Sequence record: MT028491.1
Direction: 5' to 3' (one strand)
DNA: 64,000 nucleotides
Part shown: in pieces, positions 1,219 to 60,992 of the stretch
How positions within the stretch are numbered: position 1 is the stretch's first letter
Layout of the letters: each line of letters starts with the position of its first letter
Notes under the pieces: generated by a model
What the model saw: only the letters and a program-made list of their open reading frames with translations
Databases searched by the model: none
What the model was told of the DNA's origin: nothing
Position numbers and translations under genes: made by a program

Positions 1219-2115
1219 TTATACCTGATTTTCAGTTCCCTTACAAATTTTCTGATAGGCAACTCTATGGCAATCTAGAATTAAATCCTTGATAACACCA
1301 ATCACTTCACCCTCAATTTTTTTGGTATCTTCGGCGTGTAATTGAACTCTACCATCATTATAAACTGTCATTATACCACCATACAAGCTATCATATATGC
1401 TTGAAAATGGCCTGCAATAATCTTGCATTATGTAAACGCAATCTGATTTAAAATCAAAAAATATGTTTTTCAATTCTAGAAAATCAGATGAAAACTCCAT
1501 TAATTGACAATCATCATCTTGGACATAAATTGAACCATCAGTTGTAACGAACAAGGGATTGGCTTCACCAACGTCAATCAAAGCATTTATTTCATTGGTG
1601 TTAGCCATATCAATAGTACCAATGACGGAATTAATATATGTCCACATTGTAAAGTGTATATCACATAAATTCATTCCATCTAAAGATTGCATATCAAGTT
1701 TACGTGGATACATCATGTAATACAAATCTTTTGACACATAAGATGCATTAATTAATGTATGAAATACTTCATTGTCTTTTTCTTTACATTGAATTATTAA
1801 ATCAAATTTAGACAATAATACTTTATATACATATTCTTTCACATTATCAGTATTATTTTTGTCAGTACAATATCCATAGAGTAAAAAATTATACATTGCA
1901 ACGTTAGGAGAACCCAATCTTGTTCGTACTGAAAAAGAATTCGGAACGCTACTTGGAAGACCAATTGAATAATAAAAATGTTCTGTTTTCAAATTCAATT
2001 CGCTATGATTCTCATGAAAAGTCATGCCACTGCGATTAAGATATGGCCAGTGAATATTTCTCTGGTTCTTTGATACATTTCGACTAGCCACAAAACTTTC
2101 ATGTACCTTGTTCAC
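1219..2115 (-). CDS. hypothetical early protein, C-terminal-His paralog family (long form)
   Basis: 298 aa; TVYNDG ... IKDLILDCHR. Confidence 0.75.
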   Translation of the reverse strand: MNKVHESFVASRNVSKNQRNIHWPYLNRSGMTFHENHSELNLKTEHFYYSIGLPSSVPNSFSVRTRLGSPNVAMYNFLLYGYCTDKNNTDNVKEYVYKVLLSKFDLIIQCKEKDNEVFHTLINASYVSKDLYYMMYPRKLDMQSLDGMNLCDIHFTMWTYINSVIGTIDMANTNEINALIDVGEANPLFVTTDGSIYVQDDDCQLMEFSSDFLELKNIFFDFKSDCVYIMQDYCRPFSSIYDSLYGGIMTVYNDGRVQLHAEDTKKIEGEVIGVIKDLILDCHRVAYQKICKGTENQV

Positions 2116-53103: not shown

Positions 53104-53487
53104 TCACCCTTTTATTATTTTTCTTAGTTCTGATATGACTTTTTGATCTAAGTTGAAACCATCCGTTGGTATCACTTTATTATCATAGACGACTTCTTTG
53201 GGAAAAAAGTCTAGGAGTATAAGGAATGGAGATAAAACATCCTCATGACCATGTAATTCCATGTAGAGTATATTGGTCAATGCATGATGTTCAAAAACAT
53301 TATAGAGAATTCGAATATGGTTAAGTATAGAATTCGTCTGTAAAGTGCCATTGGATTTATAATGGCGCATTAGTCGCCTAATTTTACGCACACGCTTCAA
53401 ATCTTCAATAAATTCATCTGTAGAAATGCATATATGTGTGTAATGTTGGGCGGCATATATTTCAACATTAGATTTTGTTAGCATCAA
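53104..53487 (-). CDS. conserved T4-like hypothetical protein
   Basis: YAAQHY...EFIEDLKR...ILNHIRILYNVF pattern. Confidence 0.7.
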   Translation of the reverse strand: MMLTKSNVEIYAAQHYTHICISTDEFIEDLKRVRKIRRLMRHYKSNGTLQTNSILNHIRILYNVFEHHALTNILYMELHGHEDVLSPFLILLDFFPKEVVYDNKVIPTDGFNLDQKVISELRKIIKG

Positions 53488-54318: not shown

Positions 54319-54326
54319 TATTTATA
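54319..54326 (-). promoter_or_regulatory. T4-type late promoter
   Basis: Perfect TATAAATA on the minus strand. Confidence 0.7.
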
Positions 54327-54331
54327 AAAAC

Positions 54332-54353
54332 AAAGGGGGATTTCTCCCCCTTT
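54332..54353 (-). terminator. intrinsic terminator after the ART gene
   Basis: AAAGGGGGA-GAAA-TCCCCCTTT. Confidence 0.7.
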
Positions 54354-54366
54354 GTTAACTTTCGAA

Positions 54367-57300
54367 TTATATGCTTCTATTAATTCTTTTGTCTTTAAGA
54401 ACACTCTTTGAAACAAGTTTTACCTTGTAACACTTGTAAATTTCAATTTGTGAACGTCCATCATAAACAACAAGTTCTGGCGATCTGATATTATCGCCAC
54501 CGTAACCGGCGCGTCTTACTTGTGTTCTTTCGTCACTGATATATAGGTTAGATTCGAAAACATAACCGATAGTTCCAAATCTGCGACCGAAACCACTATC
54601 ACCGACATATTGCAGAGACTTTTCAAGAACTGGTGATAGATAGATACCGTTGCCGAGCATCTTACCAGTGACTTGAACGCCACCAATAGCTTGTGTAACG
54701 ACCTTAAAGCCAAATCGGAGAATCATATTCGCCGCCACCGATCCAGTGCCGTGGAAGAGTTGAGTTTCAACCTTGGCATTTGGATGATTATTCTTGAATT
54801 GAACCAATTCATCCGGTCTAATATGAACATCGTAAACATCTAGAACAACACAAGCGATGTCACCATGGCGACCATTGTATTTCTTTTCATACAAATCGTA
54901 TGAAATGGCGTCTAGATCATCTGTTGACAAATCAAGTTTCGTGACTTGAAGGTCTGGAACCCCAACAATATCGACCTTTTCAATTGCATCCTTGATACTG
55001 TTGAAAACACCCTTATTCTTGAATTCAGCCGCCGAAAATTTCACATCTGCATGTGTCTTAACGTCAAAATCGTTGAACTTCAAAATATCACTAAGACCTT
55101 TTGGAGTTAGCCTTAGATAAATAGGAAGAACCGATTTTGTATTGCTAAGCATGTCCATGACAGCTTTGTTAGTGACCATATCATCAGTGATTGATTCAAT
55201 GTGCTTAGGAGTGATTTTTTCATCACCAAAAACAAGCTTTAGATATTCATCAAACTGTTCCTTGCGGTCTTGTTCTGACAAATCGGAGTCGTTATAGATG
55301 TCATTGAAAAGTGTACCAAAACCCATGTTCTTAGCGACAGTAGGAGTAATTTTTACATTACTTTCCTTCATCTTTTCACGAATAATATTAGCATAAACCT
55401 TATACCAATTGCGATTATAACGAATAAGAGTTTCGGAAACTAGGTCTTTGGAATTCTTTCTGCGAGAAGTCACAATGTATTCAACATATGAACCAATTGC
55501 AGATTGAACATGAGCTACAGACAATACAGATTTGTAATTATCGATACCAGCATTGACAAATGCAGTAGGATCAAAACTACCACCACCATAACTAAGAAGA
55601 CTTCTCATCAAATTCATGATGGAAATATGGGCGATATATTCATCCCATTTCTTAGAAATGTTGATCATCTGTCCAAGCTTAGAGTACATAGAAAAGAAGT
55701 TCTGAGAACCAATTTGGGTAATTCTATTGTTACTATAAGAAGGACCAAACATTCCGGCAGTTTGGAAAAGTGGAGCAATGTTTCTTGAAAGAATTTTCAA
55801 TGTAAGTTCCGGGTTTACACTCAAAATATCCAATGAAATATCTTCATTTCCTGCAAAATTGTGATCAATCACCATTGCAGACAATGCGTTCATAATCTTT
55901 TTAACATCTGTAGGCACAGTGTCGCTGACATCCGTCATCATCTTAGCGATTCTGATTTGGATTTCGTGCGGCTTGTCGTTTAATGATAGAATCTTATCAA
56001 ACAAACTCTTAAGTTTTGTTTGATCAATCATAGTGGTTGCAAGCAATTCGGTAAAGATTTTAAAGAATCTATCATAATCGCTTGATCTTTGTGCCTTGAT
56101 AAGCAAATCAAGAGCATGAATGATTTTCTCATATAGAATGATATTGACATCGCTAAAAGATATATCACCACTATGAAGCATCTGAATAAATGAATTAGTT
56201 GTCGCATCATTCAAAGACATCATATTGACAAGCGTGAAATCACTCCATGCGGAACTGATCTTGGTTGTTCCAAAGAATGAAACAACATTAGTACCAGTCA
56301 ACATTTCATCCCAATAGCCATAAATTGGAACAGAATCGTTGTACGTATAACGTAACAAGGTCATCATTTTGTTCCAGTAATCAACGGAAGAAAATGGAGT
56401 TGTTTTGATCATTTGAGTTAGTTCTTGACGATGTTCATCAAGATAACGCTTGACAATCTGTTGAGACGTTACACTAGCACCATAACCAACAGCCAGAATA
56501 TCGAATTGCTGCATTTCAATGGCTTTAGCAACTACCGGTTCGACCAGAACATAAGGTAATTCACTAATCATATTGAAATTACTGAATCTCTTATGCGTTG
56601 AAAGATTTAGAGCAAAATCAATAGCGTCTTCAATAAATCTTTCCCAAGTTCCACCGTTGTCAATAACAAATTTCTTAAGAGATTTATCGTCAACAAGTTC
56701 ATCAATTTCAAAACCTTCTGGCGTTCCAATAATTTCATTGATACGTTCAATGTAATCACCAGTAGTCATATAATCGCTGGATTTAGTTTTGGTAGCAAAA
56801 CCAATGAATTCACCAACTCTGGTAACAAGTGTGATAAGAGCGGCACCACCAACTTTAACATCTGCCAGATTAACAGAAATTTTCATTTTGGCAAAGAAAC
56901 CACTTGACGCAAGAGCAAGGAATCGTTTTCCAATTTCCGAATCAACCGGATATTTTTTGAAAAGCTTTTCGGTATTGAGATTGTAAGTGTCTTTGACGAG
57001 ATTGGACAAAGCGTCTACAAAAGCCGTATCCTGATTCATCTTTTCCATAATATCAAAGAAATCTACAAAATCTTGTTGATGAATCTCTTCAACTTTATTG
57101 AAGATTTGCATAAGATTTGTGTTGAATTCCTTGAGAATACCAGCCTGTGACACCAAAATATCAGCATAATGATTGTAGACCAATTCAATAACATGAACAG
57201 CCTTATCAAGCTGATAATTGTCATAGCTTCTGCAATACATGTCGATCAAACGATGATAGTTCGTATAACGTGCATAACTCTTGGAAAATTTAGAAAGATC

Positions 57301-58875
57301 ACCTAGACGATTATATTCATAAGGCGAGAACCAAACAACACCACTTGCCATACCAGCCAAATAGGTATCAACAGCCTTCTTATATTCACCTTCGGTAAAC
57401 ATATATTCAGCGGTTGATGAAAGTGCATCGAAGACTTCCTTGACAGTTGGCGTAATACCATTTTCAAGCAATTCATCGAATCTTTCTTCCGACATCTTTT
57501 CACTTAGCTTATCGCTTTGTTGTGGCTTTGAATAGAGTTTATGTTGATACAAGCGTTCATACGTATTTTGTGACATATTAATGCCGACAGGTGAAATCTT
57601 AATTTCACCAAACCCAACTTTAGCATCCAAATCAATATCATAATTGATACGACCGTATGTGTGGATGAAACTTGCCACATCACGATAAGTTCTAATGATG
57701 TTTTTCTTGGCTGTTCTCTTGTCACCATAAATGGATGTATAATACTTATCCAAATCCTTGGCATAAACAGATGCAAGTAAGACATAAACGTTAAAACGAT
57801 CAGCATCATTGCTATAACTGTTAGGGTCTAGGAATTTGTCATTTGCAACAGACACCACAAAAGAAGCGTCTTCTACAATTTGTTTATAACGATCATCATC
57901 ATAGTTGACGATTGCCACCTTGTTTGTAACCGTCACATCAGCGGCGGTTTTCTTCGGACGACCGCGCTTTTTAACAACCACTTCACCGGCAGCATCTACC
58001 TTGATGGTTTCAGAAGGTTGAGCAACAATCGGCGCTGTTTGGGTAACAGTTGTGATATTTGCCTTTGGAGCTTCATCAACCGTAGGAGTGTTTACAATTG
58101 CCTTTGCAGTAGGTTCCGGTTCATCCTTTTTATCGTCCTGTACAACAGGCGCGCTTACGGGCGCGGGTGCTTGAACTACCGGCGTAGGTGTTGGAGTAAC
58201 GGCAACATTTGTTGCTGGAATCGGAATTCCCTTGTCAACTGGAATTTGAGCCGGTTGTGCAACTGGCGTTGCAGTTACAGGGACAGGATCGGGTTTTTTA
58301 TCAATGAGCGCATCGGTTGCAGCATCATCGTCCGAAAAATCGGCAGAGAATGCACCAGTCATACGCGCAATAAGCTGGAAAGCATCAGAATGCTTGTGTA
58401 GCTTTGCATATTGATAGAAAGGTTTGATCAATTCCGCAAGCTTAATCTTGCCATCAAGCCAATCCTTGATAACAGGTCTAATGCGAGGATCGGGCAACAT
58501 AGTAGCCCAAACAACTTTGTTGAAAAGTGCGCGAAGAATATCTTCGTTAATGTCAAGACTTGGCTTGGTCTTTAAAAGGAATAGAAGCTTTGTATATTCG
58601 TTAACGAATGAAAGTCTTAAATAACCCTTGTCAAATGCCATCTTCAATGAAACGGCCATATCATTATCATCATCGCTAATATTTGCGATTCTAGCACTTT
58701 TCAAATTCTTGAGCGCCTTAATGATTAGATAATGCTTAGGATATTCTTTCTTAAGAGCAAGAAAACCTAGATTGTTGATCCAGAACAAAGTTCTTACAAG
58801 ATTAGGATCGTTGATAATGGCTTCTTTTTCGCCATCATCTTTAAAAAGAGTTGTTTCTAATAGATTATCTTCCAT
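54367..58875 (-). CDS. large protein with C-terminal PARP-type (H-Y-E) ADP-ribosyltransferase domain
   Basis: LFHGT, VTGKMLGNGIYLS, EKSLQY, PELVVYD parallel PARP1 WHGS, VTGYMFGKGIYFA, SKSANY, EYIVYD; Pro/Ala linker; AT-hook KKRGRPKK. Confidence 0.85.
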   Translation of the reverse strand: MEDNLLETTLFKDDGEKEAIINDPNLVRTLFWINNLGFLALKKEYPKHYLIIKALKNLKSARIANISDDDNDMAVSLKMAFDKGYLRLSFVNEYTKLLFLLKTKPSLDINEDILRALFNKVVWATMLPDPRIRPVIKDWLDGKIKLAELIKPFYQYAKLHKHSDAFQLIARMTGAFSADFSDDDAATDALIDKKPDPVPVTATPVAQPAQIPVDKGIPIPATNVAVTPTPTPVVQAPAPVSAPVVQDDKKDEPEPTAKAIVNTPTVDEAPKANITTVTQTAPIVAQPSETIKVDAAGEVVVKKRGRPKKTAADVTVTNKVAIVNYDDDRYKQIVEDASFVVSVANDKFLDPNSYSNDADRFNVYVLLASVYAKDLDKYYTSIYGDKRTAKKNIIRTYRDVASFIHTYGRINYDIDLDAKVGFGEIKISPVGINMSQNTYERLYQHKLYSKPQQSDKLSEKMSEERFDELLENGITPTVKEVFDALSSTAEYMFTEGEYKKAVDTYLAGMASGVVWFSPYEYNRLGDLSKFSKSYARYTNYHRLIDMYCRSYDNYQLDKAVHVIELVYNHYADILVSQAGILKEFNTNLMQIFNKVEEIHQQDFVDFFDIMEKMNQDTAFVDALSNLVKDTYNLNTEKLFKKYPVDSEIGKRFLALASSGFFAKMKISVNLADVKVGGAALITLVTRVGEFIGFATKTKSSDYMTTGDYIERINEIIGTPEGFEIDELVDDKSLKKFVIDNGGTWERFIEDAIDFALNLSTHKRFSNFNMISELPYVLVEPVVAKAIEMQQFDILAVGYGASVTSQQIVKRYLDEHRQELTQMIKTTPFSSVDYWNKMMTLLRYTYNDSVPIYGYWDEMLTGTNVVSFFGTTKISSAWSDFTLVNMMSLNDATTNSFIQMLHSGDISFSDVNIILYEKIIHALDLLIKAQRSSDYDRFFKIFTELLATTMIDQTKLKSLFDKILSLNDKPHEIQIRIAKMMTDVSDTVPTDVKKIMNALSAMVIDHNFAGNEDISLDILSVNPELTLKILSRNIAPLFQTAGMFGPSYSNNRITQIGSQNFFSMYSKLGQMINISKKWDEYIAHISIMNLMRSLLSYGGGSFDPTAFVNAGIDNYKSVLSVAHVQSAIGSYVEYIVTSRRKNSKDLVSETLIRYNRNWYKVYANIIREKMKESNVKITPTVAKNMGFGTLFNDIYNDSDLSEQDRKEQFDEYLKLVFGDEKITPKHIESITDDMVTNKAVMDMLSNTKSVLPIYLRLTPKGLSDILKFNDFDVKTHADVKFSAAEFKNKGVFNSIKDAIEKVDIVGVPDLQVTKLDLSTDDLDAISYDLYEKKYNGRHGDIACVVLDVYDVHIRPDELVQFKNNHPNAKVETQLFHGTGSVAANMILRFGFKVVTQAIGGVQVTGKMLGNGIYLSPVLEKSLQYVGDSGFGRRFGTIGYVFESNLYISDERTQVRRAGYGGDNIRSPELVVYDGRSQIEIYKCYKVKLVSKSVLKDKRINRSI

Positions 58876-59233
58876 ATCCTAATTTCTCTAATGCACTATA
58901 CCATGTCTTTGTGACTTCTTTTAAATCCAATTGATCTTCATCTAGCAAATTATCATCCATTTCTAGGAGCAATCTTGCATTGAAAATTTCCATCGAATCA
59001 GGGATACGATAGATAGGTTGTGTGTCTTTTATCGTATCGATTGGAAATGTAAAGTTGACTTCTGTGTAGTAAAAATTTGATGTGTGAATGTTCTGCGAAG
59101 CGCCGTAGCGTTCCACAAATTCATCATATGTGATTACCCCGTCCACCACAGGAATATATTCATCCACAAACTGGAATGAGATATATTGTTCCTTCGGCGC
59201 GGAATCCACATAGTTTTTAAAGCCTAATGCCAT
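58865..59233 (-). CDS. hypothetical acidic protein
   Basis: 122 aa between the Acb1-like and ART genes, overlapping the ART start. Confidence 0.7.
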   Translation of the reverse strand: MALGFKNYVDSAPKEQYISFQFVDEYIPVVDGVITYDEFVERYGASQNIHTSNFYYTEVNFTFPIDTIKDTQPIYRIPDSMEIFNARLLLEMDDNLLDEDQLDLKEVTKTWYSALEKLGYGR

Positions 59234-59239
59234 CGCCCG

Positions 59240-59719
59240 TTAACCTTTTGCGTATTGTTCCACTCTATCGACAATTATATCAAAATCCGGTAGTTTCGTC
59301 GCGAGAAGAAATTCCTTGGACTGATTGTAATTGTACGACAAAGAGACGTGCGGGTTAAAAGTCGGATAGTCCGACTCCAATCCGAACACGTCTCCATAGT
59401 AGTTATATAAACTGGTAAGCCTGAAATTTCGTTCCAATTTTAATACAGGAACATCATTGCTATCCCCAAACAGAGCAAATTTTAAAGGACTAACCTTGAA
59501 TGGTTCGATATTATATTTGCGTGTTGAGAAGTTTTTGCTACCAACTTCACTATAAAAAACTGTAGTGTGGAACTTGAAATTCTTAGCTGATTGTGAAGTT
59601 CCAGAAAATGATTTCGTAAGATCGAAACCGTTCTGTTCACAATAATTTCTAAGCTTTTCATCAGTCTCTTCCGTAAACCTAATACATACGAAATTAGCTG
59701 TTCTTGTTCCCACTCTCAA
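59240..59719 (-). CDS. 2H phosphodiesterase, Acb1/gp57B-like (anti-CBASS)
   Basis: Two 2H motifs, HTTVFYS and PHVSLSYN, with VLKL and IIVDR resembling T4 gp57B. Confidence 0.8.
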   Translation of the reverse strand: MRVGTRTANFVCIRFTEETDEKLRNYCEQNGFDLTKSFSGTSQSAKNFKFHTTVFYSEVGSKNFSTRKYNIEPFKVSPLKFALFGDSNDVPVLKLERNFRLTSLYNYYGDVFGLESDYPTFNPHVSLSYNYNQSKEFLLATKLPDFDIIVDRVEQYAKG

Positions 59720-59993
59720 TTTTCCTTTTTGACTCTTCTAGATACTTCTTAATAGCATCTAGTGAAGCCCTACATGTTCTATTATTGTTATCTAACTCAA
59801 CTAACAATTTGGCAATCTGGCCATCTGTCAATGTCTTAAAATTCGGATAACGGCGCATAACAGGACAATTATACATTGCTTCGTCTGGAATGACAACTGT
59901 ATGAACTGTCCTAATAATTATTTGCGGCTTTGGCGTTAATGTACACGCCGAAACTGCAAAAAGCATCATAAGGCCAACTAATATTTTCTTCAT
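59694..59993 (-). CDS. outer-membrane spanin (o-spanin) lipoprotein
   Basis: Lipobox FAVSA-C; Pro/Cys pattern; directly follows the i-spanin. Confidence 0.75.
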   Translation of the reverse strand: MKKILVGLMMLFAVSACTLTPKPQIIIRTVHTVVIPDEAMYNCPVMRRYPNFKTLTDGQIAKLLVELDNNNRTCRASLDAIKKYLEESKRKIESGNKNS

Positions 59994-60355
59994 TTTTGAC
60001 CTACTCTTTCACTAAGAGCCTTAACTGTATTTTTCAATACATCAGAAGATTGGTTATCTTTATCAGGTGATTGATCAATCTGTTCATTAACCTTATCACC
60101 AAATTCCTGAATAACTAAAAGGTTATCCTGAAATGACTTAATGATTACCTTTTGATTTTCCAAAATCTCTTCATTAAGTTGACGGAATTTTTCTTTTTCT
60201 TCTAGCTCTTTTGTTAAAAGATCATTGTGTTGTTGTAGGGTAGCTTCCAATCTTACCTTATCATCATGAGCTTTCAATAAGAACCAACCGGTTACAATAA
60301 GACATAGAATGATAGCACCACCAGCTAACCATTTATTGGTAAGGATTTGCAGCAT
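59990..60355 (-). CDS. inner-membrane spanin (i-spanin)
   Basis: N-terminal TM followed by a long coiled coil. Confidence 0.7.
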   Translation of the reverse strand: MLQILTNKWLAGGAIILCLIVTGWFLLKAHDDKVRLEATLQQHNDLLTKELEEKEKFRQLNEEILENQKVIIKSFQDNLLVIQEFGDKVNEQIDQSPDKDNQSSDVLKNTVKALSERVGQK

Positions 60356-60936
60356 TATTCACCGCCCGATGCATACTCATCATCATTGCCAGAATACAGA
60401 TAATCATCCACATACTTACGGCATGGAACCGGTAGTGAAGCTTGATCAAGCTTTTTAACTGCTTCTTCACGTCCATAGAAACTAATATACGAATCGATTA
60501 CGCCGCGAATGAATTCTTGCATTTCATTGTCAAGAGGAAAATCACCGTCTTGAACAGCACCAGATTCAAACAAAGATGTTAGCTCTAGGTTGAGGAAAAT
60601 CGATTCATTTTGATTACGTTGTGCAAGACGTTCTCTATCGGCCTTACGAACCTTTGGCATAAGACGCTTGGCAAAACGATCAATTAGACCCTTTTTCTTG
60701 GCTACACGCTTATCAATTTCCATCTTCTGTGCTACAGATAGTTGGGAATATTTTAGACCGGCACGACCGGCAACAATACGACGAACCATTTTAACAGCCA
60801 TGCGACGAGCGCGCTTTTCAAGCTGTTCTGGTTGGGCAAGACGCTTTGCGAGGCGATTACGCGCAATCGACATCTTTTTACGATATTTACGAATGTTTCT
60901 AGCTCTTGCTAGTCTTTGACCATAATCTAATGGCAT
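60355..60936 (-). CDS. basic T4-like head/core protein
   Basis: QRLARARNIRK...LEKRARR...YSQLS..QK..IDKR...RLMPKVRKADRER Arg/Lys-rich pattern. Confidence 0.65.
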   Translation of the reverse strand: MPLDYGQRLARARNIRKYRKKMSIARNRLAKRLAQPEQLEKRARRMAVKMVRRIVAGRAGLKYSQLSVAQKMEIDKRVAKKKGLIDRFAKRLMPKVRKADRERLAQRNQNESIFLNLELTSLFESGAVQDGDFPLDNEMQEFIRGVIDSYISFYGREEAVKKLDQASLPVPCRKYVDDYLYSGNDDEYASGGE

Positions 60937-60984: not shown

Positions 60985-60992
60985 TATTTATG
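60985..60992 (-). promoter_or_regulatory. T4-type late promoter variant
   Basis: CATAAATA upstream of the 60936 start. Confidence 0.55.

Follow-up and report, generated by a model that had tools for sequence, protein, structure and literature searches.

A PARP-type ADP-ribosyltransferase of Ochrobactrum phage vB_OspM_OC as a candidate injected effector analogous to T4 Alt

In bacteriophage T4 the prohead protease gp21 cuts its substrates after an L/I-x-E motif, and the ADP-ribosyltransferase (ART) Alt belongs to the head core, undergoes processing, at its C-terminus as well, and is ejected (PMC9026906). More generally, phage ARTs have been argued to be often packaged in the head and injected (PMC7824862, PMC9503650), and the surveys by Iyer, Burroughs, Aravind and co-workers record PARP/PART enzymes from viruses with large genomes, jumbo phages among them (PMC7824862, PMC9503650), and rank the PART/PARP family with the commonest viral ARTs (PMC9503650). 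Here we describe phiOC_p405 (hereafter p405), a giant PARP/PART protein encoded by the Ochrobactrum phage vB_OspM_OC (MT028491.1), a T4-like jumbo myovirus filed under Kyanoviridae with a genome of 227,654 bp. The window that we analyzed is the final 64 kb (64,000 nucleotides) of this genome, a window position being the record position minus 163,654. The assignment of a PARP domain to p405 is by itself routine and already public in UniProt and in GenBank, where the gene is labeled 'poly [ADP-ribose] polymerase 1 domain-like protein' with the domain noted as C-terminal; p405 is not discussed in the publication describing the phage. The contributions of the present analysis are a family-wide tripartite architecture, an N-terminal motif of the gp21 type that is paralleled by T4 Alt, and late-promoter evidence. 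Because architecture, motif and promoter evidence combine in its favor, the best-supported reading, to which we assign a probability of about 0.5, is that p405 is an injected effector which parallels T4 Alt in function but carries a PARP-type catalytic domain and is not an Alt homologue. The protein falls within the family covered by the surveys cited above, the available parts of which do not describe the tripartite architecture, the L/I-x-E-N-S-L-Y start or the late promoters (PMC7824862, PMC9503650). As far as we could find, the literature holds no enzymatic assay of any family member.

The open reading frame (ORF) of p405 is intact, with an ATG start and zero internal stops in both the ORF list and the translation, and these, together with the motif positions (Table 1), confirm the 1502-amino-acid ORF and every motif quoted in the first-pass annotation of this DNA. 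That annotation had also placed the C-terminal module in the PARP (H-Y-E) clade of ARTs, and profile as well as structure comparisons bear this out. The Pfam model PF00644 is matched at 31.7 bits by the whole of p405 and at 34.2 bits by a 353-amino-acid piece (residues 1150-1502), against a gathering cut-off of 26.7, and 28 of 30 p405 homologues likewise match it. An AlphaFold2 model of this piece, computed with the 30 homologues as input, has a mean predicted local distance difference test score (pLDDT) of 86.5 and a predicted template-modeling score of 0.79. The top 50 matches of the model in a Foldseek search of the PDB are all catalytic fragments of PARP1 or PARP2 (best E 3.9e-11, probability 1.0, identity about 13-16%), the overall template-modeling (TM) score reaching no more than about 0.4 since the p405 model and these fragments place their sub-domains differently with respect to one another. 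In BFVD the matches are, in order, p405 itself, four phage homologues, and giant-virus PARPs together with the iridovirus 100L protein. At the sequence level, HMMER matches to PDB sequences are confined to PARP1, PARP2 and tankyrases.

These HMMER alignments pair L-F-H-G-T of p405 with the His motif of PARP, V-T-G-K-M-L-G-N-G-I-Y-L-S with V-T-G-Y-M-F-G-K-G-I-Y-F-A, and E-K-S-L-Q-Y with S-K-S-A-N-Y. The earlier equation of individual p405 residues with PARP1 counterparts thereby holds for the His, the Met, the first Tyr, the Lys and the second Tyr; that of the Glu finds its backing in conservation and a predicted strand. In all three HMMER searches against PDB sequences the alignments of p405 to PARP1 end before the Glu and cover the first half of the domain, and we propose E1467 as the catalytic Glu because it is invariant, within S-P-E, in the 30 aligned homologues and starts a predicted β-strand. 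In the same family alignment H1375, Y1412, K1419, Y1423 and S1465 are invariant too, P1466 is at least 90% conserved, and the catalytic module has some 20 other positions that vary little or not at all across homologues that are 23-59% identical. On these sequence and model comparisons, p405 is predicted to be a catalytically competent PARP-clade (H-Y-E) ADP-ribosyltransferase. The degree of conservation bears directly on whether p405 could instead be a structural or scaffold-like component of the head or tail, its PARP-like domain being a catalytically dead relic. A very large, mainly helical protein that is poorly conserved across about 900 residues might suit such a role, but the invariance of the active-site H, Y, K, Y and E and of much of their surroundings, in a module that is the best-conserved part of p405, makes this highly improbable, the least probable of the explanations that we weighed.

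Eukaryotic PARP1 and PARP2 (ARTD, PF00644) thus have the ART fold in common with p405, along with motifs for the His, the Tyr of G-x-G-I-Y, the Lys and the second Tyr that align residue by residue. In PARP1-3 a helical regulatory domain precedes the ART core, and p405 likewise has a helical segment there: eight confident helices lie upstream of its ART core, and the best structural matches are PARP1/2 fragments containing the helical regulatory domain, over about 350-410 columns at a root-mean-square deviation of about 16 Å. HMMER against PDB sequences gave no match of p405 to this domain, and the likeness is only suggestive. Unlike PARP1/2, p405 has no zinc-finger, BRCT or WGR domains, and its N-terminal 1250 residues are unrelated to them.

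To delineate the family we scanned 1.84 billion representatives, each standing for a cluster at 50% identity, exhaustively with HMMER. At E<=1e-3 this recovered 312 matches, and tightening the limit to E<=1e-10 left 266, so that the family comprises at least 266 such representatives; nearly all are 900-1550 amino acids long and carry the PARP-like module near the C-terminus. Further, tblastn detected homologues in 37 other phage records, namely Stenotrophomonas Menderavirus, Aeromonas Aeh1, PX29, phiAS5 and relatives, Pseudomonas pf16, Ralstonia RSP15, Xanthomonas X1/BUDD and one uncultured phage. The named carriers are all large phages, mostly T4-like, and several of the records label the gene as an ADP-ribosyltransferase or a PARP catalytic domain protein. 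An earlier remark that PARP-like enzymes are rare in phages does not survive these counts, nor the ranking of PART/PARP among the commonest viral ARTs in PMC9503650.

Across this family the sequences display a common signature: the N-terminal domain and the PARP-type end are conserved, and the helical middle that separates them is hypervariable. Comparison of p405 with the two representatives P0002 and P0003 illustrates this, with identities of 60-62% in the N-domain and 53-66% in the C-terminal module against 20-38% in between. Searched with a hidden Markov model of the N-domain, 137 of 148 full-length family members prove to carry it. The domain has no match in Pfam, the PDB or T4 Alt. We also considered whether it is a module common to other effectors, of which the searches gave no sign: a word-indexed search with residues 1-180 matched only P0002 and P0003, and the hidden Markov model found no second copy across the whole vB_OspM_OC genome. 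The middle region is matched, among all the representatives scanned, by P0002 and P0003 only. An AlphaFold2 model of residues 1-1200 agrees with the layout proposed in the first-pass annotation, in which the N-domain is followed by a linker, an AT-hook-like site and a helical remainder; its Foldseek matches were generic HEAT/ARM solenoids (CRM1, cohesin SA2, importins) at TM scores of 0.1-0.2, which we discarded as non-specific. No second enzymatic domain was detected in p405 by Pfam, PHROGs, NCBIfam, PADLOC or Foldseek, and with a single recognized enzymatic domain, not several, we did not place it in the polyvalent protein class (PMC5512222). Scans with PADLOC, NCBIfam and Rfam returned no match, and the sole PHROGs match is to phrog_18612, a family of unknown function.

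Among the named homologues, those of the Stenotrophomonas Menderavirus phages Ps15 (ORF165) and Moby and of pf16 (gp92), Aeh1 (ORF131c), phiAS5, PX29, X1/BUDD and RSP15 have the C-terminal module in common with p405 at 31-40% identity, and most of them also have the p405-type N-domain and an L-x-E-N-S-L-Y start. They differ from p405 in that their middle regions are unrelated in sequence and their genes occupy other genomic positions. Many family members carry about 100 additional, weakly conserved residues after the ART domain, which are absent from p405, P0002 and P0003; p405 has no [LI]xE after residue 1400. One metagenomic phage contig (L013:1-9933) encodes two paralogous giant PARP-like proteins (at least 1334 and 1310 amino acids) 2.5 kb apart, and the small genes between them include Phage_DsbA, 'Sequestin' and Rv2179c-like genes.

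The extreme N-terminus of these proteins suggests a connection with the phage head. An [LI]xE motif occurs within the first 30 residues of 132 of the 148 full-length representatives, and in 117 of them it takes the extended form [LIV]-x-E-N-[ST]-[LFI]-[YFW] after a variable leader, leader and motif up to the Glu spanning 4-33 residues. The background frequency of [LI]xEN in the ORFs of vB_OspM_OC is 1.6%. T4 Alt, as translated from the T4 record, starts with MELITE followed by L-F, and an older GenBank record gives 6 residues as removed. The machinery for such processing is annotated in vB_OspM_OC itself: p032 is annotated as a T4-like gp21 protease and has L-C-E at residues 4-6, p031 is annotated as a prohead core protein (gp22-like), is acidic and contains 17 [LI]xE motifs, and the major capsid protein p030 has LLE|GA at 59-61. 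The idea of gp21-type processing near MEDNLLE, voiced in the first reading of this DNA, gains support from the fit to L/I-x-E, the MELITE start of T4 Alt, the conservation in 117-132 of the 148 proteins and the annotated gp21 protease. We infer that the N-domain would target the protein to the prohead core.

The likeness to T4 Alt lies in the proposed life history, in a T4-type phage with a gp21 protease and in an L/I-x-E within the first 7 residues (MELITE and MEDNLLE). The two proteins differ in clade, R-S-E (Alt/VIP2) for Alt, a mono-ADP-ribosyltransferase, and H-Y-E (PARP) for p405, and in length, p405 being 2.2 times longer; packaging is, for p405, a prediction. We examined whether the p405 family is homologous to Alt and rejected this: an hhalign comparison between the family alignment and Alt returned a probability of 0.1% (E 0.56), the N-terminal cleavage-type motif being all that is alike. 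Moreover, vB_OspM_OC has no Alt homologue detectable by tblastn of T4 Alt against the whole genome (best E 1.8). T4 positions 122000-134000 show rIII followed, about 5 kb downstream and on the same strand, by alt; in vB_OspM_OC the distance from the rIII-like gene down to p405 is 1.5 kb. This order may be a remnant of a shared gene order or a coincidence; the homologues of Ps15, pf16 and Aeh1 sit elsewhere.

Contextual evidence from promoter motifs is consistent with late expression. The p405 gene is the last of six tightly packed co-directional genes, p410 (rIII-like), p409, p408, p407, p406 and p405, and a late-promoter-like element precedes the first of them (Table 1). In a syntenic metagenomic relative (L008), which has the corresponding gene order minus p407 and a p405 homologue that is only 34% identical, the element is conserved at the corresponding position as CATAAATAAGGTTA, and a hairpin equivalent to the one past p405 closes the unit. 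When gene starts were counted using MT028491.1 1-50000 (side locus L005), NATAAATA was found 30-83 nt upstream of 10 of the 14 structural genes of vB_OspM_OC (9 of these within 30-59 nt) and of none of the 10 replication genes. Given that it stands before structural and never before replication genes, the motif behaves as a gp55-type late promoter, and the NATAAATA/TATAAATA pattern looks like the late-promoter code of vB_OspM_OC, which is absent from the paper on this phage. Comparable elements precede the homologues in other phages: GATAAATA and AATAAATA stand 33-34 nt upstream of those in Ps15 and L014, and CTAAATA is found upstream of those in pf16 and Aeh1. The exact TATAAATA shows no enrichment across the window, with 6 copies against 6.6 expected; the information lies solely in where it stands with respect to genes. 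A copy of TATAAATA lies at 54319-54326 (minus strand), directly past the p405 terminator and ahead of p404. Late expression of p405 is plausible on this evidence, and the earlier characterization of p405 as late-expressed receives indirect support from the element before the operon, the gene bias of NATAAATA and the motifs upstream of the homologues.

Several observations weigh against packaging and injection. An [LI]xE occurs in the first 12 residues of 11% of the vB_OspM_OC ORFs of at least 100 amino acids, and, because the family members are homologous, its sharing among them is not independent evidence; the L/I-x-E may be the first conserved element of the N-domain, kept for structure and not for cleavage. 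The near-invariant Asn after the Glu corresponds to no known requirement of gp21, the leader including L-x-E is only 4-5 residues long in some members, shorter than T4 capsid-targeting sequences, and p405, at 170 kDa, is more than twice the size of Alt, to which it has no homology that hhalign can detect. On the catalytic side, the assignment of the Glu comes from conservation and the predicted strand. The gene lies outside the head-gene cluster, among accessory and anti-defense-type genes, and, from the sigma-70-like promoter within the operon, p407 through p405 could be expressed early as well. Finally, no virion proteomics was found in the papers on vB_OspM_OC, pf16, Ps15, X1 and marine phages, or for other carriers of a homologue.

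Several of these points favor what we regard as the main rival, namely that p405 is not packaged and acts within the infected cell, like T4 ModA/ModB or the anti-CRISPR ART AcrIF11, by modifying host proteins of defense or gene expression, or phage proteins, in the same infection that produced it. The location of p405 in an accessory region beside an Acb1-type anti-CBASS gene (p407) would fit such a role, as would the strong internal sigma-70-like promoter and a variable middle suited to an arms race with host targets. Further, a second family member, P0007 in L014, adjoins another Acb1 gene, with NADAR-DarT1 and NAMPT genes nearby. A direct involvement of Acb1 in a p405 system was considered and rejected, the gene being absent from this position in L008, the closest syntenic relative. 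What a purely cytoplasmic enzyme leaves without an obvious role is the conserved leader with its L/I-x-E and the dedicated N-domain; moreover, late-promoter motifs stand upstream of the operon and of the homologues, and a takeover or anti-defense enzyme made only late would come too late unless it were carried over. We therefore hold this intracellular role to be possible but doubtful, and retain the injected effector as the preferred reading.

The linker of p405 raises the question of a nucleic-acid target. Its KKRGRPKK site scores 12.9 bits (E 0.11) with the Pfam AT_hook model (PF02178), below the cut-off of 17.4, and a K/R-flanked RGRP is found in the linker of only five family members, p405 and, at the corresponding position, P0002, P0052, P0103 and P0145. 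The AT-hook, put forward earlier as a defining feature of the protein, does not stand as one, with RGRP confined to these five members and a sub-threshold Pfam score. It could still be that p405 ADP-ribosylates DNA or RNA ends or bases, the AT-hook holding the enzyme on AT-rich DNA: PARP1-3 and other H-Y-E ARTs are able to modify DNA ends, the RGRP recurs in four other members, the genome has a G+C content of 33-40%, and the phage encodes a NADAR protein, of a family that includes reversers of DNA-base ADP-ribosylation. With the AT-hook missing from more than 95% of the family and below the Pfam cut-off, and with structural matches to PARP1/2 and not to DarT-like enzymes, such a target is quite unlikely.

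With regard to the nature of the modification, the Lys and Met equivalents of the PARP acceptor side are present in p405 and conserved in the family. The H-Y-E triad is needed for polymerase activity but is not enough for it. In p405, 44 residues separate the second Tyr from the Glu, against 81 between the second Tyr and the catalytic Glu of PARP1 (PARP1 numbering), and therefore the acceptor-side loops of the PARP1 type appear much shortened or largely missing in p405. From these sequence features we consider mono-ADP-ribosylation, or the formation of short chains or oligomers, to be more likely for p405 than that of long polymers. A stronger proposal, that p405 is a true poly(ADP-ribose) polymerase carried in the phage head, injected with the DNA and attaching poly(ADP-ribose) chains to macromolecules of host or phage within seconds of the onset of infection, is unlikely; if true, poly-ADP-ribosylation would for the first time be seen to serve a phage as a weapon, and the proposed descent of eukaryotic PARPs from phage or toxin enzymes would have a living model. 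The ADP-ribose-removing enzymes annotated in vB_OspM_OC are the macro-domain protein p102 and the NADAR protein only, with no PARG annotated; the macro-domain label of p102 finds no Pfam support at E<=1e-3.

Besides NADAR, the NAD+-related genes of vB_OspM_OC encode NadV, NatV, NadR and PnuC. The draining of NAD+, suggested earlier as a possible function, is a poor fit to a phage so equipped, and as a sole purpose it is unlikely because the phage rebuilds NAD+. A related proposal would make p405 a toxin-like NAD+-consuming or superinfection-exclusion module, either a plain NAD+ drain or one held in check by a hydrolase. In Aeh1 an ADP-ribosylglycohydrolase gene (ORF132c, L004:1230-2111; PF03747, 113.7 bits) lies directly upstream of the p405 homologue. 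The two neighbors are probably the 'ART-ARG pair' of PMC9503650, which calls the Aeromonas-phage pair toxin-antitoxin-like. No hydrolase gene, however, adjoins p405 or its homologues in Ps15, pf16, L008, L011, L012 and L013, the phage invests in NAD+ salvage, PADLOC gives no match, and 1502 residues with a processed-looking N-terminus are atypical of the toxins of toxin-antitoxin systems; we accordingly judge this explanation improbable.

Table 1. Features of p405 and its surroundings in the window (position 1 is the first nucleotide of the window)
Feature	Residues	Window position	Strand	Remarks
phiOC_p405 (QIG66047.1), predicted PARP-type ADP-ribosyltransferase	1-1502	54367..58875	-	1502 aa, 169.8 kDa; 100% match to MT028491.1 218021-222529
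Leader MEDNLLE	1-7	58855..58875	-	L5-L6-E7, candidate gp21-type cleavage site after E7; followed by T-T-L-F
Conserved all-alpha N-domain, proposed head-core targeting module	8-178	58342..58854	-	pI 9.5; pLDDT 90-96 over 11-170
Disordered V/A/P/T-rich linker	179-325	57901..58341	-	pLDDT <50; V 16%, A 15%, P 14%, T 12%
AT-hook-like KKRGRPKK	302-309	57949..57972	-	RGRP core, K/R flanks
Fast-evolving all-alpha middle	326-1249	55129..57900	-	All helices, pLDDT mostly 50-70
Conserved C-terminal module, helices and PARP-type ART core	1250-1502	54370..55128	-	Pfam, AlphaFold2, Foldseek
H1375 codon, His of H-Y-E	1375	54751..54753	-	Invariant; aligned to PARP1 catalytic His
Y1412 codon, Tyr of H-Y-E	1412	54640..54642	-	Invariant; aligned to Tyr of PARP1 G-x-G-I-Y-F
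E1467 codon, proposed catalytic Glu in S-P-E	1467	54475..54477	-	Invariant; first residue of predicted beta-strand
Motif LFHGT	1373-1377		-	Motif scan of p405
Motif VTGKMLGNGIYLS	1402-1414		-	Motif scan of p405
Motif EKSLQY	1418-1423		-	Motif scan of p405
Motif PELVVYD	1466-1472		-	Motif scan of p405
Upstream genes p410, p409, p408, p407, p406		58865..60936	-	p406 end overlaps p405 start by 11 nt
CATAAATA, late-promoter-like element		60985..60992	-	About 55 nt upstream of p410
Near-consensus sigma-70 promoter		59868-59896	-	TTGTCA, 17 nt, TATAAT (11/12); inside p408, about 150 nt upstream of Acb1-like gene
Intrinsic terminator-like hairpin		54332..54352	-	15 nt past p405 stop; 7-bp G+C-rich stem and T run
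phiOC_p408, hypothetical protein		59694-59993	-	Pfam LysC (Rz1-like lysis protein), 27.8 bits vs cut-off 27
phiOC_p407, annotated RNA 2',3'-cyclic phosphodiesterase/LigT-like		59240-59719	-	Pfam Acb1 (anti-CBASS 2H phosphodiesterase, PF23474), 41.7 bits vs cut-off 27
phiOC_p401, DUF7207 protein		53104-53487	-	Pfam 118.5 bits; a few genes downstream of the giant ART also in L008, L009 and L011

As to the neighboring genes, p408 lies two genes downstream of the rIII-like p410, and the operon combines lysis-type genes with the ART.

Returning to the reading of p405 as an injected effector, we infer that p405 is active as an enzyme and that it is cleaved, packaged and injected, infer likewise what kind of target it has, and envisage the following course of events. 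The protein would be produced late, from the end of an operon under a gp55-type late promoter, and its basic, conserved N-domain would carry it into the prohead core, where the gp21-like prohead protease would cut off the short leader after L-L-E7. The resulting mostly alpha-helical protein of about 169 kDa would remain in the head beside the DNA and be ejected into the next host cell, where its C-terminal domain, with NAD+ as substrate, would ADP-ribosylate macromolecules of the host right at the onset of infection, the choice of target probably being made by the fast-evolving middle region.

If p405 is indeed packaged and injected, then T4-like phages without Alt would have reached a first strike by ADP-ribosylation via the other great ART clade, the one that underlies eukaryotic PARP signaling. 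The family would then offer a tractable bacterial system in which to study the PARP core in minimal form and to test the descent of eukaryotic PARPs from phage or toxin enzymes, and the hypervariable middle of some 900 residues might preserve a record of targets switched during the arms race between phage and host.

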